From contig JALMLS010000376.1 of the NCBI GenBank assembly GCA_038496445.1, positions 558,001 through 622,000 on the forward strand: a stretch of DNA of 64,000 nucleotides, in the 5' to 3' direction. The DNA comes from Trichosphaerium sp. ATCC 40318. Taxonomy: Eukaryota > Protista > Tubulinea. The notes below the pieces were generated by a model, which saw only the letters and a list, made by a program, of their open reading frames with translations, did not search any database and was not told the origin of the DNA. Positions 24,307 to 41,870 of this stretch are shown here, piece by piece (within the stretch, counting starts at the first letter, position 1; each line of letters opens with the position of its first letter). The position numbers and the translations under genes are program-made.

Positions 24307-27300
24307 ATGGCTGCTCGTTCCGCAAAGCCCACGCCTATACCATGGAAAGCGACGATTATGGTCGGAGTCGTCATGTTATGTGATAACATGGTACTAAGTC
24401 TAAAACTGTTGAAATAATGCTAACGTGTTGCAGGCGCTTTACCAGATCATCCCTTACGCACCTTTTCTTGTTAAAAAGTTTCTTGGGGTTTGTTCACAAA
24501 GAGCCTTGTTTAATGCGTAATCCTAACTCTCAATAGATACCCGATACAGAAAAAGGGCGTATTGGCTATTATGCAGGTAAATACATCCGCTTTGAAACTT
24601 CAAGTATTTCTCCTTACTTTTGCTTTAGGTCTTATTACATCCGCTTACGCGTTTGCACAACTTTTGAGCAGGTTAGATCATCATTTGAGATCTTTTCAGA
24701 AACATTATGATTTTGAGCCTTGGAAGTAATTTAAAACTAGTTTTCCCATTGGAAGCCTTTCAGATAGATTTGGTAGACGTGCTGTAATTGTTGGCGGTAT
24801 GATCGGCACGGTACACATGACACAACTAGATCAAACAACATTTCTTTTTTTCTAACCCACGTGACAGACGATAGCGACATTTGCTTTTGGTTTTGCAAAG
24901 TCTTTTTGGTTTGCGCTTCTAACGCGGGCATTTAATGGACTTGTTAATGGCAATGCAGGAGTGGTAAAGACGTATCGTACGAAGAGATTTTAACGCGAAA
25001 AAAACCTTGCCAAAAAAAAAAATTTTCAACGTAATTTAACGCCTCTTAGTTGCTCAATGCACAGATAACACTAATAAAGCGAGAGCATTTGCTGTATTTG
25101 GTATAGCTGGTGGTCTAGGACGAATTAGTACGCTCACTGTGGTGATATTGTTGCTTCACATTTTTTCTGAAATCACAAGTTGGATCAGTTTTGTTTACTC
25201 ACTGACCTCTCCTAGTTGGACCTTTGATCGGTGGTACACTTCAAGAGCCATCAGCGAGTTATCCAAAGGTAAACAAACTAACCTCCAGTTAGAAACAGCA
25301 ATTTTTCTTCAATCTTGCCTTAACCTATCGCCAAGAAAGTTATGGTATACGAAGCACCAGCCTCCGGACATGTGTATACCCTCACCATATGTCATTACGT
25401 GATATGTTAAGGCAGCATTGAAAAAAATTTGCTGTTTCTGAATTGATGTTTTTGCTTGTGATGTTGATTCTTATTTTTCTCTGTCTTAGCTGTTTCCTAA
25501 AGGATCATTCTTTGATACATTTCCATACATGCTCCCTTGTCTTGCATCAATGGTTTTCACAATAACAGGCCTTATTCTTGCTTTCCTATTCGTCAAAGAA
25601 CCTAAACCACGTGTACTTTATTTAATCCACTACGTTTACTATATTAACTCTACTCTTTCTAGACAACGTCTGTGGAGATTGAGATGGAGGAAACTCTTAT
25701 TATTAACGAAGATGATATTGATAATAGCTCCTCAGAAAGTGGTGACGAAGATTCGAATTCAGATGTAGGCGTACCACGTGATGATGTGAAGCCTCCTGGT
25801 TTCTTTAGATCGTTATCAAAGAATTGCACAGCGTTTGATATGAATGTTATCAGTAATAGAACTGTATGGCTTGCTACATCAATGTATGGTTTAATTGCTT
25901 TCCAATCTATCGTTTTTGATGAAGTATTCAGTCTACTCATGTACGTACTTTTTTTGCTTTTTTTTCTCGTGAGAAGTAAGTTGAGTGGTGTTTGTCTTCA
26001 TCTCTCAACTCTTTTGGTTTCCAATGTTTATAACATAAAGGATCAAGGAATCTGAATTGATTTATTATGACTTTGTCCGAAGTGAAAGTATTCTAAAGGC
26101 GATGTGTTTGCACAACTTCATAACAATTTTGTTTGTTTCTTTCAAACTAATGTTCTTTTTTTGTTTAGATTGGGACCTCCGGAACAAGGTGGATTAAACT
26201 TTGATGCTAAGCGTATTGGTATCTGTATTAGCGCTGCTGGCGGTTGTGTTATGGTTTACCAGCTTTGTATATACCCACATATTGTCAAGTACCTTGGACC
26301 ATTAAAATCTATGAGGGTACGACTTCACTTTTTTAATCCTTGCTCTCCCACACGTGATCTTTATTTTTTTTTGATACAAATTAAATTAAATTCGGTCGTA
26401 AAGAAAGTACATTTTGACACAAGACCTTTAATGAGGAGAGTGCAAACACTACTTTTGTTTTTTAACTTTGGTTTTTTGCTTTAGATTGCACAGTTTAGTG
26501 TTGGTATTGTAATGCTCATATTTCCTTTTGTTGGATTGTTGCATAAAAACGTGGTTCTTTCTTGGATTGCAGTTATAGCATTAATGATACGTACGTGTAA
26601 TTGAATTTTTTTGACAGCGATTTGTTGTGAGCATCAGCCTTTTTTTTGAAAAATTTGGCGCGTGGCCTGCTTTTTGATGGGTTGATGCGATGATTATTTT
26701 TAAAACCAATCAAGTTCTCTTACTTCAATCGGTCAGAGCATCTGTCTAATACACAGAAGGTTGTGAGTTCAAGTCTCATAGGGAACATTAAAATTGTTGT
26801 TTTTCTAATTGATTTATTTTATCATACTTTTTTAGGAATAGAACTAACTTGTCTTTTTCAGTACGATATTTATTTGTTATTACTGTATACACATGCACAT
26901 TCGTTCTTATTGCGAACTGTATTGAGGAGACTAAGCTTGGTGCTGTTAATGGTACGCGAGATTTAAAGAAAAATTGTACAAGATTTTTCGCTTACTGAAC
27001 TGTTTTGAAGGTATCGGGCAATCTTTAGCTTCTTTTGCTAGGGGAGTAGGTATGTGACCTTGTCTTGTATTTAAACGTTTAATTTTTATTTCTGATATTA
27101 TGCATACATAAAAATTAGAAAACAATCACGTGATATTATTCCAACAAGATAGTTTAAAGTTTCTTCAAATACCATTTGTCATTATTTACAGGTTTTTTTA
27201 GGACCTACACTGGGTGCTACGTTATTTGCTTGGTCTCAAACGTGGAATATACATATATGGCCACTCGATTTCCATTTTGTTCATGTTATGATTGCAGTAG

Positions 27301-27744: not shown

Positions 27745-28878
27745 TTACAGATTATAATACTTTAGTTCTCCATCTTGACGCCATGATTTAATTTCGCCCT
27801 GTTTACCCTCAACCCACAGAGAATAGATCTTTAGTTGTCCATTTTCATACCATACTTTACTTTCACCATGTTGTTTACCATCAACCCATGTGGATTGGCT
27901 ACGAAGTTTTCCATTTTCATACCATGATTTACGTTCACCATGTTGTTTACCATCAACCCATGTGCCTTGCTCCTCAAGTTGCCCATTTTCAAACCATATT
28001 TTACTTTCACCATGTTGTTTATCATCAACCCACATGCATTGGTCCTTAAGATTTCCATTTTCATACCATCCTTTACTTTCACCATTTTGTTTACCATCAG
28101 CCCACATGGATTGACCCTCAAGTTGTCCATTTTCATGCCAATCTTTACGTTCACCATGCTGTTTACCACCAACCAATGTGCATTGGATCTTTAGTTGTCC
28201 ATTTCTAAACCATGCTTTACGTTCAACATGCTGTTTACCATCAACCAATGTGCATTGGATCTTTAGTTGGCCATTTCTAAACCACAATTTACTTTCACCA
28301 TGCTGTTTACCCTCAACCCATGTGGATTGGCTACGAAGTTTTCCATTTTCATACCATGATTTACGTTCACCATGTTGTTTACCATTAACCAATGTGCATT
28401 GGATCTTTAGTTGTCCATTTCTAAACCATGCTTTACGTTCACCATGCTGTTTACCACCAACCAATGTGCATTGGATCTTTAGTTGGCCATTTCTAAACCA
28501 TGATTTACTTTCACCATGCTGTTTACCATCAACCCACACAGTTTGCCGTTTTAGTTGTCCATTATCGTACCATGACTTACTCTCACCTTGTTTTTTACCA
28601 TTAACCGATATGTGCTGCTCCTTGAGCGATCCATTCAAATACCATTCTTTATACAATCCATTCACTGCATATTGGTGGGAATGTACCTTTCCACTTTTGT
28701 ACCATCTTATCCATATCCCTTTTCTTTCTAACATTTCATCAAAATGTGTATTTGTCGCAGCTCTCTTTGATAGAGTGTGGAACTTTGTGAATGTTTCCAT
28801 ATTGAATGTACAAATATGGGTTTGAAGTTCGCATGGAATATCCAACAAACTCAAACAACAACCCAATTCACTAGACAA
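27745..28878 (-). CDS. F-box-like N-terminus plus about 12-13 MORN-variant (YwqK-like) 24-aa repeats, copy A; start codon uncertain
   Basis: SLLDIPCELQTHICTF, then 72-bp repeats GE(S/R)KxWyeNGqLxxQxxWVDGKQH; uninterrupted ORF; the TTG start is not confirmed and the first in-frame ATG lies after the F-box core. Confidence 0.85.
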   Translation of the reverse strand: MSSELGCCLSLLDIPCELQTHICTFNMETFTKFHTLSKRAATNTHFDEMLERKGIWIRWYKSGKVHSHQYAVNGLYKEWYLNGSLKEQHISVNGKKQGESKSWYDNGQLKRQTVWVDGKQHGESKSWFRNGQLKIQCTLVGGKQHGERKAWFRNGQLKIQCTLVNGKQHGERKSWYENGKLRSQSTWVEGKQHGESKLWFRNGQLKIQCTLVDGKQHVERKAWFRNGQLKIQCTLVGGKQHGERKDWHENGQLEGQSMWADGKQNGESKGWYENGNLKDQCMWVDDKQHGESKIWFENGQLEEQGTWVDGKQHGERKSWYENGKLRSQSTWVDGKQHGESKVWYENGQLKIYSLWVEGKQGEIKSWRQDGELKYYNL

Positions 28879-29427
28879 TTTTTTTTTACATGGACGTGAC
28901 TTAAAAAATCGTAAGTGGTAGAAAATTAATAGGTAACTCGTTCAGTAATCGCATACAGCAAAAATCAATCATAAAAAAAAAACTACAACGTCTGTGTGCT
29001 TGTTATCAAAAGCATAGCCTCAAAAACAAAACAAATCATTGTATTATGCTGTTAAATTTGTTATTCACGTTACATATCTCAGCCGCAGTAGCTGTAGCTT
29101 ATTTACATCGTGTTTTACGTACCATATTGAATAAAGGCTTCTAATCGTATGTAAAATGTCTTCGTTATGGTTTAGCGCTACCTGTGTGACTTGTTGTCTT
29201 CAAAGAACAGTATTCGCGGTTTTACTAGGAACTGACTTTTTTGTACCGGCTTAGCCGGGACCGAACCACGATGGCTCCACTTGAAAGTTGAAATAATACG
29301 ATTTCAACGGGTAGTTGATATTTACAGATTAGTCAAAATGAACCCATTAGTAAATCTTGAAAAATAGTTTTCGCAAACGATGAGTATCTAGCATTCGACA
29401 ATATTCTGTAAATTGCTTCTATTTTAA

Positions 29428-29460
29428 ATCACGTGATTGTTGTGGCGGCCAATGAGTCAA
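29428..29460 (+). promoter_or_regulatory. Candidate promoter module upstream of the LRR gene: ATCACGTGAT E-box, CCAAT and TGAGTCA
   Basis: atcacgtgattgttgtggcggccaatgagtcaa, retained in the inverted copy at about 40547-40580 (conservation may reflect recent duplication only). Confidence 0.4.
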
Positions 29461-29543
29461 CCAGGGTAAACTTAGGAAGCGTCAAGATTATTCAGCACAT
29501 CGCGAGATTGTGCGTGCAGTACGGAATACAGAATAAGGTTAAA

Positions 29544-30972
29544 ATGGAGTCTAGCAGTAACTCAAGTCGAAGGTATCGTCTAATACTCTATTTCACAGTT
29601 TTTAACCATCACGCCGTTCTAAAAGTCTTCTACTAGTGCCGAAACGAGTCTTTTGGACATACCAACAGAGATTTTAGTTCTTATTTTCCTTTTTACGACA
29701 AAAGCTCGATTTGCAGTTTGTCAAACTTGTCGTTGCTTTGCATCTATTATTCACGATATTATTGGCTACACACAAGTAATAATTAGACACATTAAAGGAG
29801 CGAAAAAATTCATATCATACAAAGGGTGTTTGAAACACACAAGGATTGACTTGGCTAGTTGCTTTCCTGCAAAGTTTGTAGCGAAGTTTGCTGGAGTTCA
29901 TACCATTAATCTTTATTGTAAGAGTGTAAAAAATCACGCAATTAAAGCACTTGCTGGAGTTCATACAATTAATCTTAGTGACTGTTGGAGCATTAAAGAT
30001 AAAGGTATTAAAGCGCTTGCTGGGGTTCATACCATTGATCTTCAAGAATGTGACAACATTACAGCTGAAGGTGTTAAAGCACTTGCTGGAGTTCATACCA
30101 TTGATCTTAGTCACTGTGAGAAGATAACAGATGAAGGTATTAAAGCACTCAAAGGAGTTCATACCATTTATCTTAGTCACTGTGAGAAGATAACAGATGA
30201 AGGTATTAAAGCACTCGCTGGAGTTCATGAAATTGATCTTACTGGATGCAACAAGATAACAGATGAAGGGATTAAAGCGCTAGCTGGAGTTCATACCATC
30301 GATCTTAGTTACTGTGAGAATATAACAGATGCAGGTATTAAAGCACTCAAAGGAGTTCATACCATTGTTCTTAGTTACTGTGGCAATATAACAGATGAAG
30401 GGGTTATAGCGCTAGCTGGAGTTCATACAATTGATCTCAGTTACTGTGAGAAGATAGCAGATGAAGGCATTAAAGCACTCAAAGGAGTTCACACAATTAA
30501 TCTTAAATATAGTTTTAAGATTTCTTATTTGGGTGTTAAAGCACTTGCTGGAGTTCATACCATTAATCTTAATTCCTGTGACAATATAACAGATGAAGGG
30601 GTTATAGCGCTAGCTGGAGTTCATACAATTGATCTCAGTTACTGTGAGAAGATAACAGATGAAGGGATTAAAGCACTCAAAGGAGTTCATACCATTGATC
30701 TCAGTTACTGTGAGAATATAACAGATGAAGGCATTAAAGCACTCAAAGGAGTTTATGATATTGATCTTACTGAATGCGACAATATAACAGATGAAGGGGT
30801 TATAGCGCTAGCTGGAGTTCATACAATTGATCTCAGTTACTGTGAGAAGATAACAGATGAAGGGATTAAAGCACTCAAAGGAGTTTATGATATTGATCTT
30901 ACTGAATGCAACAATATAACAGATGAAGGTATTACAGCACTCAAAGGAGCACATGAAATTACATTTGGTTAA
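29544..30972 (+). CDS. F-box plus 16 cysteine-containing 22-aa LRRs, copy A; exon 1 29544-29572, intron 29573-29636
   Basis: Spliced start MESSSNSSRSAETSLLDIPTEILVLIFLF; 66-bp repeats LAGVHTIDLxxCxxITDEGIKA. Confidence 0.9.
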
Positions 30973-31729
30973 GATAACAGACAAAAAGGGATCACTTGCT
31001 GAAGTTTGTAGTTATTAGTATCAGTAAAAATTGTTGTTATCCTTTATTGTAAAGATAGATTATTAATAACAAGATTTTATTCTTTAACTCCACCGGACAA
31101 CAATTACCTCCAAGAGAGAACATTATTAGTGCCAGGTCCAAAACAGGGTTGAGCTACATTGTTCTTGGGTACAACAGATTCGCTTCTATAGCTGGTGTTT
31201 TGAACGCTGTTACTACTGAGAACAGTAAACACTGTTGCTATTTGCCTTGTTTGAAATCATCTTCGCTAGCGACAATGGTTCTTATTGTTGTTCCCTTGAA
31301 ATAACAAGCGTTAGATGCTTACATGTAGCAAGTTTTTAGGCAAAATTAAGTCGCTAAAAGTTGGAAAAAAAGAGGATTGATTTTAATACATCAATGTACC
31401 TGCTATGTTGTTGGAGTCTAAATTGAAAATGAAACTTTCTTGCAGTTTTTGTAAGTGACCATCAATGAAAACTTGTTGTCTGTACATGTTTTCTCTAAGT
31501 CACTACACATTTTTTTTATGACATTTTCGTTGCAACTTAACTGTACTTGCTTACAGCAACACAAAACGAACAAATCTTCTCTAACCACGCGTCTCCGATA
31601 CTTCAATTGTACGTATTCAGGCTCAAGAGCTTTTTAAAGTGCAATGTCGTTTCTATTCTCTAAACCATCTCCAAAACGACTTTTTAACCGTCCGTTGTAC
31701 CACTAAACGCCAACTAAACTTATTTTTAG

Positions 31730-32263
31730 ATGAGTGCAACAACACCACGTCTAGATGCGTTGATTGTAGAATTACGAGAGCTTCACACAAGCATTGGGTT
31801 CAGCGACGAGGAAATAATCAGTATGATGAAGCTACATGATGATGTAGGTAAAATTGACAATGAACGTACTTCTTTCCAAAACTTGGGAGCAGTTGTGATG
31901 AGTGCTTTTACAATATTTTCTCTTTTTGATGAGAATAATGTCCCAGAAAGCGTCTACAGCAAGTGGATCTCTAAAAAGCTTAAAGAGTACTCTGAGTTCG
32001 AGGTAAGCCAAGATGTGAAGGATATATGCGCTGCAGAGGGAGCTAAGATGGTAGCTATTGTATCAATGGGTGGTGTTTCTGAAGATGAACTATTTAAAGA
32101 AGTTGGTTTTATGAGCAAGATGTATTGTATTTGTAAGCCACATGGTATTGGTTTAGAAGTGTTATTGAAGATTGCTTCTTATTATAAAGAGTTTGATGCC
32201 GAGGTTGATAGTTTTGGTGGTGATCATGCAGTGTACATGATGAGACTTGTAGGAAATCAATAA
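31730..32263 (+). CDS. Intronless hypothetical protein, 177 aa
   Basis: ATG-initiated ORF with protein-like composition; AATAAA at the stop; no recognised domain. Confidence 0.7.
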   Translation: MSATTPRLDALIVELRELHTSIGFSDEEIISMMKLHDDVGKIDNERTSFQNLGAVVMSAFTIFSLFDENNVPESVYSKWISKKLKEYSEFEVSQDVKDICAAEGAKMVAIVSMGGVSEDELFKEVGFMSKMYCICKPHGIGLEVLLKIASYYKEFDAEVDSFGGDHAVYMMRLVGNQ

Positions 32264-32473
32264 AATAAAACCCTAGAAATACCTTCCGAAATTCGTTGTC
32301 GTTTCACTAGTCACTCGGCTGTGTGATTTCGTGTTTTACTTGTACTGGAGGTCTATTTACGGAATATGAGGATTATATAAGTGTCTTACGCTCATAGCTG
32401 GTGAACTCTTTGTCGATTTTGAAACTGGGGCATTTTAGTTTTCAAAAAAAATTTTACACTTTTCGTTTTTTAT

Positions 32474-34986
32474 TTACATGGAGGTTTTTATATTTTTTAT
32501 GACTGGTGCGCCTCTTGACTCTTTAACAGCAGTTCTAAAATATTCAATATCAGTAAGATACCCACACTGACAAACAACGAAAAAACCATCAAATTACTCG
32601 GTTCTTTTTTGAATTGAAACAAATCTTGTACTGTACCTAAAACTTGGCAGATGTATTTTAGCACTTGGGCTTCGCCTTGTACGTGTTGATACACGTTCGC
32701 GCACTTTAGGGCTATGATGCTCTAGTACCACATCACAGCTCTTGGCGTTATGTGGCTCAATACTGTCTTCATCTTCTGAGTCACTCCTAAAATATGTTAA
32801 AAACTGTCCGACGGAAGCAGTGATAACAATAATGATGCGAAAAAGAAGTGTGGTTTAATAAAATTGTAAGTATTGACGCAAAAATAAAGGACGAACAGAA
32901 AGATGATGAATTAAGCAGACTCTGATTTTTTTAGTCACGTGCTTCAAAACGTGACGCAAAATGTTTACATTACTGTTCGTAGAAATAGAAAAATAATATT
33001 AATAAATAGGAGTGCGTACAATTCAAATAATACATCTGATGGAGGAACCTCAAAAGTACCAAGATCCGGATCACCTACACAATTTGTTAGCAATAAGAAT
33101 AAAAAATGAATACCAAATGTCAATGTTTAACATTGAATTATAATTCATGTTCTTGGTCATACGTACTTTCACTTCTTGTTCCTCTCCACGGCAACGCTCT
33201 AGTATCCACCTCTGTTTTAAGTTCACCAGTCTCGATTCTATCATATTGATCTGAGTTCAAAAGCGCAGACATGTCAAAAGCAGAATCAGCTGATTTTGAT
33301 CTACACAACGCTGTTGTTCGCTTCCTTAATCCCATTTTTACCAATTGAAGTGCTTTTTCGACCTTAGGATCAGTACTAGATAAGCTAGATTCACTCAAAT
33401 TGGACAATCTTCTAACTCTATGAGTTGATGTTTCTACTCGCTTTTCTGGTGGTGCTGAATCTCTGTACTCATTCCTTTTCTCACATCTTAAAGCTTCTCC
33501 TAAGGCAAGTCCAAGAAGTCCTATGGGCTTTGATACATCGAGGGGTTGGTGTGTCATGGCGGAAGAAAATATACAGTCTTTAACATTAAGTTTATCTTTA
33601 TCAGATTGCCAAGCATTATATCGTTTAAGTAAAGGTTCGATAACATCGTTTAGTGTTTGATGGATATCACATTTCATAGATGTATGCGTATTAGGGAGTA
33701 CAAATCTCAAATAAAACCGTTTATCCTCTAACAAACAAGTTAGAAAAAGTCATACAAAAAAAAAAAGACTTGTTCAATTCAATAGGATTTTTCTAAAACA
33801 GAAATAACGGTACCTGCTCGTGATTTTGGTGTGTGACATGTTATGGTATCTCCAGGAGATAGATTAAGGTTCGATATAGGTAAATCAACATCAAGGACTA
33901 CACCCTTTGCATTTGTGACATTGTAGTCGTTGATTTTGAATGTAGTATTTTTAACTTTTTCAAGAACACGTGATATCCCTGTGCGCAGATCTTCTGTCAA
34001 TGAAAACTTTTCAGCACGTGTTTGTAAAGGTAATGCGATCCTAAGAATGATACCGTCTACATAGGAATTAGAAAAAAAACCGCACGTCTACAACTGTAAG
34101 GCGTTTGCATCTGCTCACCTGTAGGTAATGTTTTTATTTCTGTTGGAGCCTTCCATTGATCATACCGAGATACATCTTTCCATGGAGTATTACCTCCTTT
34201 AAATACCCAATCTTTGTACACAGCGCAAGTGATTAATTCTATTGAGGTGGCATAAATAATATAATAAAGTCAAGAACAAAGTAACTACGCCGAGAGATAA
34301 ATTATCTGAAAGTATGCGCAAAAAGTCGAGATTAGGATTGAACAAAAAAAAAAAAAGTGCATTATTGGCGTGTGGGTAATGGGCTGAAAAACTCCTTGAC
34401 GCCGAACCATCAACTGCAGAATGGTAGATAAGCGTGAACGCACTTTGTTTTCTTAATTCATCGAGAAGAATTATAGCGTCATCGGAGGGTAACCCATACT
34501 CCTTAGAAACTTCGTATATAGCCTCGGACGCTATCGAATAAATTAATAAGTATATAAAACTTTTTTACAGCAACCACTGCACCTCCACGTGCGCAATAAA
34601 AAAAAATAGATTTACGCCTACCTATAAACACACCATGATATTGCTTGTCGAGGAAGGTTATATTTGATTGTAAAGTTACTTTGTTCTGTATTATACCGAG
34701 TAATGCTACTGCGTCGTATAGAGAGTTTAAAATCTGTTGTTTTTTTAATGTTATTAGATTAAAATAAATTCAATTATTAGAGACAGCTTTAATTGGGCCT
34801 ACATACCTCCTTTGCGTTTGAGGTATTTTCGGGTTTAACTGGTTGAGGGTTTAATCGTGCTTTACCTATAACTGTTGCCATGTGAAGTGGTAAGCACATA
34901 ATTTTGAACAGAAATTACATAATTTTTTCAAGTGTATCGTACCTTTTTTTTTTTCCTGAATAGTCATAGAAACTTGGTCGCTTCAT
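32474..34986 (-). CDS. Hypothetical protein with tandem ubiquitin-like/Ras-binding-type domains and a Ser-rich tail, multi-exon
   Basis: ILRIALPLQTRAEKFSL...VLDVDLPISNLNLSPGDTITC and FYLRFVLPNTHTSMKCDIHQTLNDVIEPLLKRY...PLDVSKPIGLLGL resemble beta-grasp folds. Confidence 0.55.
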
Positions 34987-35375
34987 ACCTAGAGAAATAC
35001 AAGCGCGGTACTTCGTTAAAGAATAAAGCCTTTTAATGGAACGAACTGTCAGGATGTAAGAGCGTATGTGTTGTATCAAACGATTGAAGATGTGCTTTAC
35101 ACATGTACTTTCACATTAAATCTACTTAATGGTACAATGCTGGTACAGTTTCTCCAACGATATTGACAGCTGGCACGAAAGGACGTGTCGCCAAAGCTAG
35201 AAAAAGTGTAATGCCATTAAAACGGTTATTTGAAGTTTGGTCATTTGCACAAACGCGCAATGACTAACCCACTCGTTTTTTGCGTTCGCCAATGCATCAA
35301 TGAAATGTCTTCAGACTGTGGAGCAATTTCGGTTTTAATTTCACGTAAAGTCTGAAGCATAAACAATAAATAACA

Positions 35376-38300
35376 ATGCAGTTCGCATCAAGTTACGCTT
35401 GGGTTGGTAAAGCCAAAAAGGATGAGAAAGAAGTATTTTCTAAAGGTTGGCGTTAGTTTTAATTATACAACCGTCTAATACGCCTATGTAGACGCTCTAC
35501 AATCAGCACCGCAGAAGAAACGTAAAAAGAGAGCTGTACGAAGATCATCTTTAGCCAAGGTACACTTACATATTGTACATACCTATGTTAATAAAGCACG
35601 TAGAGGTCTGCTCCTCCGGCGCCGCCACAAAAAGCTTCACAGTCCAAGCCAAGCCTTCTTGGTGGCTTTTTATCAGCGTTGTACGTCTTTTAGGCACTTG
35701 TAGGAGTCTTGGGCAAAAAAAGAAAAAAAACACAATCCTCTTCGTTATACGCCCTCATAAACGCGTTGAGTTTGCATAACTAACTGTAAAAATAGCGGCA
35801 GTTCAAATTCGAAAAAAAGCTCTGGACAGGCCTATGCAGCAGCTGCGCCACCAAGAGATATGGATGAGTTTTTGGACGATTGCAGCAGCGACGATGAAGA
35901 TGATTGGGGAAGTGACAGCGAAGATGAGCTTCAAGAAATGCAACTAGACCAAAAAGAGATCAAAGATAAAACACGCGCTGTACGTTCTTTTATTTCAAAA
36001 CAAACAAAGGAAGCCAACTTTTTGGTGTTTTTTTTCAACAAATTGCATTTTGTTTTACTTGAAAATTGACTCTTTACTTCTTCAGGTGCGTAAAGCGGAT
36101 ACAAATATTGTATCTCTTAATCTCGGTACTCTTGCTGAAGGTGTAGCTATGTTCACAGGAGACCCTGTGTTCTGTACAAATTGTAAAGCTGTGTTCAGCA
36201 CGTGCAGGTTCGATTTCTTTTTTTTTGTAGTCCGGAGAACACGTGTTCAAAGTATCACGTTCAACCCGTTTAGAAACGTTTTGTCTTAACATAGCTTTTA
36301 GTAAGATCACCAGTGGCGGTGATGGTGCTGGTAAAGGAAAAGAGGAAGAGGACGAGGATGAAACTTCGTGGAAGTGTGAATTTTGCGGTGAAGTTCAAGA
36401 AATCATGTTGGAAGAAGAAGAGGTAAATATGAGTTATGCTTTGTAACGTTCGCTCACGCTATTTTTTCTAGATACCTAAACATGATACTATTGATTATAT
36501 CCTTCAACCTCCAAAGTTTAAGGACAACGAAGCAGAGAAAATTGTTGTCTTTTGCATTGGTATGTTGTAAAAATTAGTTTGTAAAATTTATTTCGTACTT
36601 ACTTTACTGCTTTAAAGATGTATCTGGATCTATGTGTATCACAACAGAGGTCAACAGCGATGATTTTAAATTAAAGAAAACTAAAAAATCAGAGTTGGAG
36701 CAATACATTGACCGTAAGCAGCCCTTGCTTCTACTTGATTAAATTTCTTAAATACTAACCAGATATTGCAGGTAACGGAGGTGGCGGTTTAGCAGATCAA
36801 TGGATGCCTAATGAGAAACGAGGTGTTACATATGTCTCTCGCTTGCAATGTGTACAAGCTGCTGTAGACGCTCAATTACAATCTCTCAGTAAAGAAGCGA
36901 ACAGCAAGGCAGTCATTGGTATGTTGGGTTTTTTTTTACGCTTTTTTTTTTTTTTGAGTTTTGTTGTGCTAACATTATTGAAGTTACGTTTGGTAATGAT
37001 GTCATCGTTTATGATTACCAAGATAAACCTCATGTTGTTACTGGAGATAAATTGAATGACTGGGACATATTGAGCACTATTTACGAAGATTTGAATATTG
37101 ATAAAGTACAACCTGTCAAAGCTTGCTTAGACCAGCTTCAGAATCGTATTTGGAGTCTTGAAGAGGGTGGCAAAACTGCATTGGGACCTGCACTTTTGGT
37201 ATCTACTGGTATTGCAAGTACTTGCGCAGGTTCATCTGTTGTGCTTTGTACTGATGGTACGACAAGACTTTTCGTAAGATTTTGTCAACTCACTTTTGCG
37301 TTCAGGTTTGGCTAATGTTGGTCTTGGTGCTCTTGAAATCTCTGAAGATGAAGCTCAAGCTTTCTACGATAAAGTAGCTCAAAAGGCTTTGAGTGCTGGT
37401 ATCGCTGTGAATGTTGTCAGTATCAAGGGCACAAACTGTAATCTAGGTATGAAAAGTTTTGTTTTTGCAGTGTTTTTTCTTACCTTTTTTTTAGAGTTTG
37501 TCGGTAAAGTGTCTGCAGATACTAAGGGTGTTAGCCATGTCGCTGATCCACTCAAACTGTCTAAGAACTTCAACTACATTTTGAAGAATGCTGTAATTGC
37601 TACAGACTGTACAATCAAGATGATAATGCACAAAGGTTTATCATTCCGTGATGTTGATGGTAAACAAACAATTGCTTCTGTAAACGTAGGAAATGTAACA
37701 GTACGTACAAACAGACTACTTTTGTATCCAAAATGATCACGTGATAAAAGAGAAAAGATCATGTGATCGAGTTAAACTCAAAAACTTATGTGTTCTTTTT
37801 AGAAAGAGTCTGTTGTTTCTTTCGAGTACTTTATGAAGTCAGGTGAAGGTATAGACAAATTATTCGAGAATCTCACAGAGCTACCTTTCCAAGTCCAAGT
37901 ACGTTAATGTTACTTTCAAAAAAAGTAGAGTAGTAGAGCTAGAGTCCTCTAACAAACCGTATTTTGTTATTTCGACATTTCTTTGTTTTTTTTTTTTTTT
38001 GGCTGTACTTATTTTCTTTTAGATTAACTATACTAAACTCGATTCTACTAAATGTATTCGTGTCATTTCAAAGGCTGAAAAGATTACAAAAGACAGAGAT
38101 GTTGCTGAACAGAATATTAATGTCAATGTTGTTGGTTTACACTCTCAACAGCAAGCAGCAAAGCTTGCACAACAAGGTCTTTACACAAAGGCTAGAATGA
38201 AGCAGGTAGAGTTTTTATTCAAGTTCACAAGCGGGTTAACTCCCGAGGAAGCTTTTTTTGTAGCACTTCAAGTTTTGTCTTTTTCGTCTTCAAATGTTCC

Positions 38301-38739
38301 TTTCTATTTTAATCTAACGTTTTTACTAGAAAGCCAACTTACGTATGGTCAAGAGACAACTCAAATCAAAGAATACTTCAGAGCAAAAGAAACAATTCGG
38401 GTACACTTGAAGAAAATAAGGTTTTGGTTTTTTTCTTACTTGCTTTGTAGTTTGTGGGAAATTGAGGCTTCTCGTCTTGATAATGCTATTCTTGAAGAGC
38501 AACAGTGTTTAGATGATGGTGACATGTATGATTCTGCTTCAGAGGATGATTCTTTCGGAGAGGAAGAGATTAAAGACGAAGAAGAGATTCAACAAAAAGC
38601 AATCAAAAATGTTAAACGTCAAAAAACACGTGCTGCAAGAAGACGTAAAAATGATAAGGTATCTAATGCGTTATACCAAGCACAGAATGCAATGTTTAGT
38701 GACTTTACATTTGCAAAAAGTCCACTACACGAAAAGTAA
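35376..38739 (+). CDS. Sec23/24-like zinc finger plus vWA protein resembling the non-Ras part of circularly permuted Ras protein 1, multi-exon
   Basis: MQFASSYAWV start; TGDPVFCTNCKAV...WKCEFCG; VFCIDVSGSMC; YVSRLQCVQAAV; TALGPALL; VVLCTDGLANVGLG. Confidence 0.85.
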
Positions 38740-38903
38740 GGGCTAGCTAGATTCCTATTGTATTTTAATAAAAAATTGAAAAACAACTTAGTGTTCTCCG
38801 CCAATAAGCTTACACGTAGTACCTTTCGCTCCTTTGTTCAATTGGTAGGCCTGAAGCGATTCCCAAGTTTCCGCCACGTTTGACTATATGGACATGTGTT
38901 AAA

Positions 38904-38992
38904 CCATGTGGGTTGATGGTAAACAACATGGCGAAAGTGCTAGATACTCCCAGTGCTTTTTGGCTGATAATAAAAAGAATGGTGAAAGCAAA
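38904..38992 (+). pseudogene. Orphan MORN-variant repeat fragment abutting the 3' end of duplicated LRR segment B
   Basis: Matches 41199-41308 with a 21-nt internal deletion and a few substitutions. Confidence 0.85.
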
Positions 38993-38993
38993 C

Positions 38994-40614
38994 AAAAGGA
39001 TAACAACAATTTATACACCAATTTTTACTGATACTGTTTAATAACTACAAACTTCAGCAAGTGATCCCTTTTTGTATATTGTCTTCATATAAAACCAAAT
39101 GTAATTTCATGCGCTCCTTTGAGTGCTTTAATACCTTCATCTGTTATCTTCTCACAGTGACTAAGAACAATGGTATGAACTCCTTTGAGTGCTTTAATAC
39201 CTGAATCTGTTATCTTCCCACAGTAACTAAGATCAATTGTATGAACTCCAGCTAACGCTATAACCCCTTCATCTGTTATCTTTTTGCATTCAGTAAGATT
39301 AATTTTATGAACTCCAGCAAGTGCTTTAATGCCTTCATCTGTTATCTTGTTGCATTCAGTAAGATCAATATCATAAACTCCTTTGAGTGCTTTAATCCCT
39401 TCATCTGTTATCTTTTTGCATTCAGTAAGATCAATTTTATGAACTCCAGCAAGTGCTTTAATGCCTTCATCTGTTATATTGTCACAGTAACTAAGATAAA
39501 TGGTATGAACTCCAGCTAGCACTTTAATCCCTTCATCTGTTATCTCGCATTCACCAAGGTCAATGGTATGAACTCCAGCAAGTGCTTTAATCCCTTCATC
39601 TGTTATTTTCTTACATTGAACAAGATAAATAGTGTGGACTCCAGCAAGTGCTTTAATACCTTTATCTGTAATGTTCCCACAGCCACTAAGGTCAATTTCA
39701 TGAACTCCAGCAAGTGCTTTAATACCTAAACCTGTTATTTTCTCACAATCACTAAGATTAATAGTGTGGACTCCAGCAAGTGCTTTAACACCCTTATCTG
39801 TAATGTACCAACAGCCGCTAATATTAATTGTGTGAACTCCTTTGAGCGCTGTAATACCTTCATCTGTTATCTTATTGCAGTTTCCGAGGTAAATTTCATG
39901 AACTCCAGCAAGTGCTTTAATACCTTTATCTGTAATTGACCAACAGTTGTTAAGATTAATAGTATGAACTCCAGCAAGTGCTTTAACACCTTCATTTGTA
40001 ATATCGCAATGTTCAGTAAGATCAATAGTATGAACCCCAGCAAGTGCTTTAATATCTTTATCTGTAATGTGCCAACAGCCACTAACATTAATTGTATGAA
40101 CTCCAGCAAACTTCGCTACAAACTTTGCAGGAAAGCAACTAGCCAAGTCAATCCTTGTGTGTTTCAAACACCCTTTGTATGATATGAATTTTTTCGCTCC
40201 TTTAATGTGTCTAATTATTACTCGTGTGTACCCAATAATATCGTGAATAATAGATGCAAAGCAACGACAAGTTTGACAAACTGCAAATCGAGCTTTTGTC
40301 GTAAAAAGGAAAATAAGAACTAAAATCTCTGTTGGTATGTCTAAAAGACTTGTTTCAGCACTAGTAGAAGACATTTAGAACGGCATGATGGTTAAAAACT
40401 GCCAAATAGAGTATTAGACGATACCTTCGACTTGAGTTACTGCTAGACTCCATTTTAACCTTATTCTGTGTATTCCGTACTGCACGCATAATCTCGCAAT
40501 GATTATTCTTGATGATTAATCTTGACGCTTCCTAAGTTTACCCTGGTTGACTCATTGGCCCGCCACAACAATCACGTGATTTAAAATAGACACAATATTG
40601 TCGAAAGCTAGATT
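38994..40614. repeat. Arm B of the inverted segmental duplication (partner about 29388-31045)
   Basis: Reverse-complement similarity to arm A in flanks, intron and F-box region. Confidence 0.9.
39085..40453 (-). CDS. F-box plus 15 cysteine-containing 22-aa LRRs, copy B; intron 40361-40424
   Basis: Same exon 1 and 64-nt intron as copy A; N-terminal region almost identical; the ATG at 40374 used by the ORF track lies within the predicted intron. Confidence 0.9.
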
Positions 40615-40786
40615 GCCAGGTTAGACTTGAAAATACCTATTTTGAGCACTAACCCTGATTTTTCGGGATGGTTTGTGACATAGGTAGGCCTCATGCAACT
40701 CTGCAACGTATACCATTAGTGTATCCTTATGGATTACTTCATGTGAGCATAAAAGCTTGAAAGTCACGTGCGTGTACAATTCGGAC

Positions 40787-41870
40787 ATGGATTTTTTTAG
40801 AAATACGCTTATGTTGTTGTTTGAGTTTATTGGATGCCAACTGCGTCAAACCTCAAAAACCAATATGGAGACATTCACACAGGGAAACCTTAACAAAGTT
40901 TGCGACTCTATCAAATGATGAAATGATTAAATAAGCATTTATGATGAGATATAGATTACAAAAAAAGTAAATGTACAAGATGGTACAACAAGTGGAAAGG
41001 TGTCTCACCAAAATGAGTGAATGGTTGTTTGAGTGGATCGCGATCAAGGGAGCAGTACATATGTTAATGGTAAAAAACAAGGTGAGAGTAAGTCATGGTA
41101 CGATAATGGACAACTAAAACGGCAAACCGTGTGGGTTGATGGTAAACAGCATGGTGAAAGTAAAGCATGGTTTAGAAATGGACAACTAAAATGGCAAGCC
41201 ATGTGGGTTGGTGGTAAACAACATGGTGAAAGTGCTAGATGGTATGAAGATGGAAAAAGAGGCTCTCAGTGCTTTTGGGCTGATAATAAAAAGAATGGTG
41301 AAAGTAAAGGATGGTTTAAGAATGGCCAACTACAGTGCCAATTTGTATGGGTCAATGATAAACAGCATGGTGAACGTAAAGATTGGTATGAAAATGGGCA
41401 ACTAGAGGGCCAGTCCATGTGGATTGATGGTAAACAAAATGGAGAAAGTAAAGGATGGTATGAAAATGGACAACTTAAGGACCAATCCATGTGGGTTGAT
41501 GATAAACAACATGTGGGTTGATGGTAAACAACATGGTGAAAGTAAAGTATGGCATCAGAATGCACAACTAAAGAGCCATTATCTGTGGGTTGAGGGTAAA
41601 CGACAGGGTGAAAGTAAATCATGGTTTGAGAATGGACAACTTGCATCTCAGTATGTATGGGTTGATAACAAACAACATGGTGAATGTAAAGATTGGTACA
41701 AAAATGGGCAGCTTGAAGGGCAATGCGCATGGGTTGATGATAAGCAACATGGCGAATGCAAAATATGGTATGACAATGGACAACTAAAGGATCAGGCCAT
41801 GTTTGTTGATGATAAACAACATGTGGTGAAAGTAAAGGATGGTATGAAGATGGAAAATTAAAGTATAATG
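40787..41870 (+). pseudogene. F-box-like/MORN-variant gene, copy B, disrupted
   Basis: Degenerate CCLSLLD...NMETFT N-terminus split across frames with stops; 22-nt tandem duplication at about 41488-41531 shifts the frame; further small insertion at about 41822. Confidence 0.8.

Follow-up and report, generated by a model that had tools for sequence, protein, structure and literature searches.

The closest described systems to the locus analysed here are the F-box/MORN families of giant viruses (Mimiviridae/Klosneuvirinae, Pithoviridae, Marseilleviridae and Pacmanvirus; PMC5753266), in which the same two domain combinations occur. Other points of comparison are the F-box/leucine-rich repeat (LRR) expansions of amoeba-associated bacteria, e.g. 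Parachlamydiaceae (PMC4209131), and the FBXL proteins (Skp2, FBXL2, KDM2B/FBXL10), which are substrate receptors of SCF (Skp1-Cullin-F-box) ubiquitin ligases. The genome paper of the amoeba Trichosphaerium counts 1,568-1,581 giant-virus-like gene models, spread over many scaffolds, in which F-box and MORN occur more often than any other domain, and it interprets these families as viral transfers (PMC10521059). That paper does not describe two-gene blocks or the inverted duplication of such blocks. Here we analyse a 64-kb window of this genome (Trichosphaerium sp. ATCC 40318, contig JALMLS010000376.1, positions 558,001 to 622,000; all positions below are counted within the window). It contains two cassettes, A and B, each with a MORN_2 gene and an LRR gene arranged head to head. 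The locus is one further example of the F-box/MORN/LRR expansions already published for Trichosphaerium and known from giant viruses.

We think it likely that the locus arose through local inverted duplication of a head-to-head block, made up of an F-box-like/MORN_2 gene and an F-box/22-residue-LRR gene, both presumed SCF receptors, within an intron-rich amoebal genome, and that the two copies then underwent reciprocal decay of one partner. The duplication itself is directly observed. Open reading frames (ORFs) and Pfam domains give the gene order MORN (leftward), LRR (rightward), about 8 kb of spacer, LRR (leftward), MORN (rightward). A BLAST comparison of one cassette with the reverse complement of the other aligns 27754-28862 with 41869-40813, and 29412-31037 with 40596-39015. 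The duplicated block is ~3.3 kb long, and its limits are the MORN stop codon at one end and a point ~65 nt past the LRR stop at the other. Terminal inverted or direct repeats, as signs of a mobile element, were looked for at the block ends and none was found. The four cassette ORFs are by far the longest of the window, the remainder of which consists of short exons, and no further member of either family lies elsewhere in the 64 kb.

These data bear out three claims of a first-pass annotation of this DNA, namely a mirror-image layout of four repeat genes (ORFs, Pfam, BLAST of the inverted arms), the enclosure of about 8 kb of unrelated genes (at least one spliced host gene lies in the spacer), and an intron-dense setting around the long repeat ORFs (short exons in the ORF survey). 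Its statement that the repeat genes have no introns is insecure for MORN-A, where a 5ʹ intron is possible.

An inverted duplication could also be produced during assembly, by fold-back or by collapse of paralogues, and the genome is a draft built from mixed long and short reads (PMC10521059). However, the two copies are 75-98% identical throughout, their LRR arrays have 16 and 15 units, and their intergenic centres and lesions differ. Since a fold-back would yield identical arms, these differences disfavour it, and we regard an assembly artefact as very improbable.

The LRR genes encode F-box-plus-repeat proteins. The Pfam model PF12937 (F-box-like; cut-off 24.3 bits) scores 31.3 bits on LRR-B and 30.2 bits on LRR-A, and PF00646 scores 19.7 bits, slightly below its cut-off of 20.5 bits. 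The repeat units are 22 aa long with an LxxLxLxxC core, and the arrays have a higher-order period of 198 nt, equal to three units (TRF). The solved sequences nearest to LRR-B are 22-residue designed or internalin LRRs and the LRR of KDM2B (FBXL10). An N-terminal F-box-like segment followed by a cysteine-containing LRR array is the feature held in common with FBXL proteins. The usual FBXL unit, however, has 26 residues, whereas that of LRR-A and LRR-B has 22, as in internalin-type or designed LRRs. Also unlike the FBXL type, the array is very regular and young, as its three-unit period indicates, and the genes, each a single exon, belong to a family of hundreds of copies, for which docking on Skp1 is predicted. 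Members of the LRR family are expressed: many LRR-family contigs are present in three transcript runs (X1, X2 and X3), although no contig in these runs was found to match LRR-A or LRR-B exactly.

The MORN genes probably encode F-box-plus-repeat proteins too. In MORN-A, ~12 MORN_2 (PF07661) units of 24 aa come after a conserved head (LLDIPCELQ...SKRAATNTHFDE); the array has a 72-nt period repeated 11.8 times and a 216-nt higher-order period, again equal to three units (TRF). An F-box-like start had been claimed for both partners. For the LRR genes this stands above the Pfam cut-off, but on the MORN-A head no Pfam F-box model matches, even at E<=10. Exhaustive HMMER searching with residues 1-106 of MORN-A identified 17 proteins whose alignment begins at the head. 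Their consensus, LLxLPxELQxxIxxLDxEVYxKWPLLSKxxAxTTRFD, has the spacing of an F-box, with LP, then hydrophobic I and L, then S/C-K. Comparison of the MORN head with the F-box of LRR-B by hhalign gave a probability of 65% over 28 columns. With alignments of these relatives as input, AlphaFold predicts three helices between residues 16 and 45 of the head, with a pLDDT of 81 in a 106-aa model and 68 in a 60-aa model. With the 60-aa model, all nine Foldseek matches in the PDB are F-box proteins of SCF complexes (D3, Skp2, TIR1, Fbw7 and one more); they extend over 35-48 columns at root-mean-square deviations of 1.8-6.0 Å (1.8-3.8 Å for eight of the nine), and each has a non-significant E-value of 1-9. 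The MORN part dominates the 106-aa model, whose matches were accordingly all to beta-hairpins (OspA, SET7/9, Rhs). The predicted fold and the consensus suggest that the MORN head is probably a divergent F-box, forming a conserved, family-specific module outside the reach of Pfam.

Damage to individual copies is also directly observed. MORN-B is a pseudogene: a frameshift and in-frame stops disrupt the degraded head in its 5ʹ part (40813-41033); a 22-nt tandem duplication at 41488-41535 shifts the frame; and a 2-nt insertion near 41822 causes another frame change. In LRR-A, AAG at 29623-29625 occupies the site of the LRR-B start ATG, and the frame, which is open throughout, has no Met codon at all. 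LRR-B is the sole plainly intact gene of the four. MORN-A has no in-frame ATG before the LLDIP head; an ATG first appears at codon 27. In run X1, a transcript contig covers 28471-28870, and the match breaks off right behind an AG at 28871/28870, pointing to a short 5ʹ intron in this gene. With one damaged gene per cassette, each cassette thus retains one apparently usable gene.

Candidates for missing first exons were considered for both families. For MORN-A, nine combinations of ATG and GT are open through the acceptor at 28871/28870, and none has the GTAC donor of the confirmed introns described below. A conserved short upstream ATG (ATGGAGTCTAGCAGTAAC...) precedes both LRR genes (29545-29573 and, on the minus strand, 40453-40425), inside the 96%-identical LRR upstream region. 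It could belong to an upstream ORF, or to a 5ʹ untranslated region (UTR) with an intron. As a spliced first exon of the LRR genes the ATG at 29545 was rejected, no GT/AG pair restoring the LRR frame.

It is clear that the two halves of the block have diverged unequally (Table 1). Across the upstream region, the first 90 codons and the 3ʹ flank, the LRR halves are 94-98% identical between the copies, versus 79-82% for the MORN coding parts where these can be aligned, and a single common history of the LRR and MORN halves is not supported by these values. The intergenic centres are non-homologous, with ~530 nt in cassette A and 217 nt in cassette B. In run X1, the transcript contigs that align with the LRR 5ʹ region have variants that are in neither copy; hence, additional paralogues have a near-identical LRR 5ʹ end. 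The likeliest explanation for the unequal divergence, which we infer from these comparisons, is concerted evolution of the LRR ends by gene conversion. The insert specific to cassette A has no second copy within the window. A separate 158-nt transcript contig (run X1) maps to 29074-29190 in this insert with four mismatches, and may represent an unannotated small transcript or a repeat sited elsewhere in the genome.

Within the LRR arrays, the variation among the 29 units is concentrated at positions 6, 8, 9, 11 and 12, around the predicted beta-strand and loop. The ratio of nonsynonymous to synonymous rates (dN/dS) is ~0.95 at these positions and 0.30 elsewhere, as expected from relaxed or mixed selection, with no demonstrable positive selection. 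The LRR paralogues appear to evolve in concert at their ends while their repeat units are rapidly shuffled. Birth-and-death evolution of these genes, which had been proposed earlier, is visible in the pseudogene, the loss of a start codon, and arrays built from three-unit higher-order repeats. The accompanying proposal of diversification by selection does not find support in the dN/dS value at the variable LRR positions.

Table 1. Features of the two cassettes and of the sequence between them, with identities between copies A and B.
Feature	Position	Strand	Description	Identity between copies
MORN-A	27745-28878	-	377-codon open frame; Pfam MORN_2 E=1.6e-58	5ʹ coding part 82%; 3ʹ end 79%
A-specific intergenic centre	28879-29411		without counterpart in cassette B	
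LRR-A-proximal conserved upstream region	29412-29625	+	214 nt upstream of LRR	95.7% (to 40596-40375)
LRR-A	29626-30972	+	F-box-like head and 16 LRR units of 22 aa; LRR_6 E=1e-60	first 90 codons 98.1%
LRR-A conserved 3ʹ flank	30973-31037	+	end of duplicated block	94% (to 39084-39015)
Spacer between cassettes	31038-39014		~8 kb of unrelated short-exon, intron-rich sequence	
LRR-B	39085-40374	-	429 aa, ATG to stop; F-box-like head and 15 LRR units of 22 aa; LRR_6 E=1e-57	
Cassette B intergenic region	40375-40812		LRR-proximal 222 nt alone homologous to cassette A	
MORN-B pseudogene	40813-41870	+	MORN_2 in two overlapping frames; pieces E=1e-17 to 1e-22	

What is the significance of the head-to-head pairing? 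The first-pass annotation viewed the two genes as a co-regulated pair. In this explanation, a bidirectional promoter would drive a two-gene module of degradation adaptors or sensors with variable specificity, directed for example against giant viruses or endosymbionts. Such a module would be consistent with the duplication of the block with both genes and UTR-sized flanks, with the focusing of LRR variation at five positions, and with examples of adjacency in part of the published gene table, where MORN-type genes lie next to virus-like genes, by their labels only, at TRSP10581/2, 11220/1 and 11227-9 (PMC10521059). However, neither cassette has both partners intact, MORN-B being a pseudogene and LRR-A having lost its start. 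A promoter common to both genes is not conserved either, as the LRR-proximal 214-222 nt alone are shared between the copies and the intergenic centre differs. The unequal divergence of the halves, and a dN/dS of ~0.95 with no signal of positive selection, also argue against a module, as do relatives of the LRR genes on virus-like and bacterial contigs, none of which has a MORN gene beside it. In the published table, again by labels only, many MORN-type and virus-like genes are solitary, and in an arbitrarily chosen section none of ~5 MORN-type genes is directly beside a virus-like or LRR-type gene (PMC10521059). Together, the damaged partners, the unconserved intergenic centre and the solitary family members give no support to a co-dependent pair, and fit clustering by local duplication. 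We consider a functional module of this kind unlikely.

Whether pairing is confined to this locus has a mixed answer. The window holds at most one independent pairing event, but label-based pairs occur elsewhere in the part of the table used, alongside the many solitary members. The divergent orientation of two repeat-containing genes is the feature in common with head-to-head pairs of plant NLR genes, an analogy drawn in the first-pass annotation. It is not supported here, the cassette proteins being without NB-ARC or signalling domains and one partner of each pair being damaged.

The setting of the cassettes is that of the host genome. Their GC content (0.34-0.37) shows no dip relative to the window (0.376), and the window as a whole, at 37.64%, may be set beside a published genome average of 37.69%, with 8.7 introns per gene and a mean intron of 75 nt (PMC10521059). 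The window has 48 sites of the motif TCACGTG (core of the palindrome TCACGTGA), versus 6.3 +/- 2.7 expected from shuffled sequence, and many of them are between genes. The palindrome is present at 29429-29436 in cassette A and at 40572-40579 in cassette B; TCACGTG precedes each LRR gene by ~195 nt and is also found upstream of MORN-B (40764-40770). This distribution suggests that the motif is likely to be a general promoter element of the genome that is present at the cassette genes. Further sites were noted at 27126-27133 and 33967-33973.

Between the cassettes, a neighbouring gene on the minus strand (32464-33734) has three GT..AG introns with GTAC donors (32535-32636, 32786-33018 and 33073-33164), all confirmed with 0 mismatches by spliced contigs from runs X1, X2 and X3. 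Since exons are joined across these introns without mismatch, the X1-X3 contigs represent RNA of the organism. Pfam searches with single spacer exons, including the largest exon of the spliced gene, gave no match. Rfam and tRNA scans found no match inside the cassettes; a tRNA-Ile gene (anticodon AAT) is at 26714-26787, ~1 kb outside cassette A.

The host-like setting bears directly on the possibility that a recent giant-virus insertion, i.e. an endogenous viral element, left the cassettes behind. Both families are linked to giant viruses. Their nearest ESM Atlas clusters, F-box/MORN_2 and F-box/LRR_6, are 75-100% Nucleocytoviricota. The best outside matches to the LRR genes, at 38% identity, are on intron-free, gene-dense metagenome contigs with 29% GC, where the neighbouring genes encode topoisomerase IA, RNB, HtrL, RNA polymerase subunit N and thymidylate synthase; such neighbours indicate that these contigs are giant-virus-like. 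The published classification of the families as viral transfers also favours this possibility. Nonetheless, the cassette proteins are ~38-45% identical at most to any viral sequence, including the described giant-virus families, and the composition of the cassettes is host-like, unlike the 28-29% GC of the virus-like contigs. No viral hallmark genes, viral domains or other long ORFs were found in the window, at least one spliced host gene lies between the cassettes, and the host-wide motif precedes cassette genes. The closest relatives of the MORN head, on transcript-like contigs of host-like GC from a protist data set, point the same way. A recent insertion is therefore improbable in our judgement. 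Of the earlier suggestion of capture from a giant virus, the link of the families to giant viruses stands, whereas GC, motif and the absence of hallmark genes speak against recent capture.

The distribution of viral best hits is also informative about where the families expanded. In the part of Table S3 of the genome paper used here, Harvfovirus8_11 is the best viral hit of at least 182 models, Harvfovirus20_10 of at least 179, an Indivirus F-box protein of at least 128, and Hyperionvirus5_103 of at least 53 (PMC10521059). Hundreds of models that fall on four viral best hits, as far as this part of the table goes, indicate that most of the expansion occurred inside the amoeba, a pattern less in keeping with numerous independent transfers. 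So few viral best hits for hundreds of genes fit amoebal expansion, and even host-to-virus transfer, at least as well as they fit viral insertion. An identification of the LRR family with 'Harvfovirus8_11' was considered and not made, the clusters being unnamed and the one NCBI contig examined being bacterial.

Other relatives of the two families fall into several groups. Whole-protein matches to the MORN genes are mostly bacterial and metagenomic MORN_2 proteins, with E-values down to 1e-59, and many of them are labelled 'YwqK'. Bacterial MORN_2 proteins ('YwqK family antitoxin') have the repeat in common with the cassette proteins but are without the LLxLPxEL... head. Many amoebal copies also bear the label 'YwqK' in the part of the published annotation used (PMC10521059), where 'antitoxin' is a transferred label. 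The relatives that share the head are on ~1-kb transcript-like contigs of 36-38% GC from one protist data set, and also in MMETSP. A scan of viral contigs with LRR-B gave no match, and one with MORN-A gave only short MORN_2 genes without a head, which are uninformative on the F-box question. On two AT-rich viral contigs, one of 388 kb, such short headless MORN_2 genes are in tandem (L001:5953-7450 and L003:5953-6435), with a cytidylyltransferase-like gene and GIY-YIG genes as neighbours. On the bacterial side, a metagenome contig with ComEC, BacA and FtsK genes as neighbours (L015:4882-12866) has six tandem FBXL15-type LRR genes, four of which are 25-29% identical to LRR-B. It may derive from an amoeba-associated bacterium with an F-box/LRR expansion of its own. 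The six-gene array resembles the expansions described for such bacteria, but differs from the cassettes in its low identity (25-29%) and in having no MORN partner.

We propose the following sequence of events for the local inverted duplication. The families have hundreds of genomic copies, with giant viruses holding their nearest outside relatives and bacteria more distant ones, and from domain architecture alone their products would be interchangeable substrate receptors of SCF ubiquitin ligases. Each protein would contact Skp1 through its F-box head and use its repeat solenoid to capture a target for ubiquitination. A two-gene block of this kind would have been duplicated locally in inverted orientation. 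Its repeat arrays would turn over by unequal exchange in blocks of three units, and gene conversion would probably keep the LRR head and flanks near-identical among paralogues. After the duplication, one partner of each cassette would have decayed, so that the locus keeps a single usable gene of each family. The adjacency of the two families would then reflect the way in which they spread, by local duplication into clusters.

Several points weigh against this explanation. Binding of Skp1 by the heads and the ubiquitin-ligase role are predictions. Pfam F-box models fail on all 18 MORN family members tested (E<=0.01), and a profile of the MORN head found no F-box match among PDB sequences. The loss of the LRR-A start comes down to one base in a 448-codon frame that is otherwise perfect; the AAG could be an assembly error or a strain polymorphism, or could be bypassed through non-AUG initiation. 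In addition, the adjacency of the families recurs in the part of the published table used, perhaps more often than chance would give, and a real two-gene unit is thus conceivable. In its fullest form, MORN and LRR would be a true duplicating unit of cooperating F-box receptors, e.g. one sensing and one executing, in surveillance against giant viruses or endosymbionts, and the decayed partners would be the losers of a birth-and-death process. We give this version little credence, and a role in defence is pure conjecture.

Two further points may interest specialists on these families. The published direction of transfer, from virus to amoeba, deserves a proper test, given the host-like GC content, the host-wide motif and, in the part of Table S3 used, the few viral best hits. 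Moreover, if the MORN head is an F-box, hundreds of amoebal genes that are now labelled 'YwqK antitoxin' would join the ubiquitin system.

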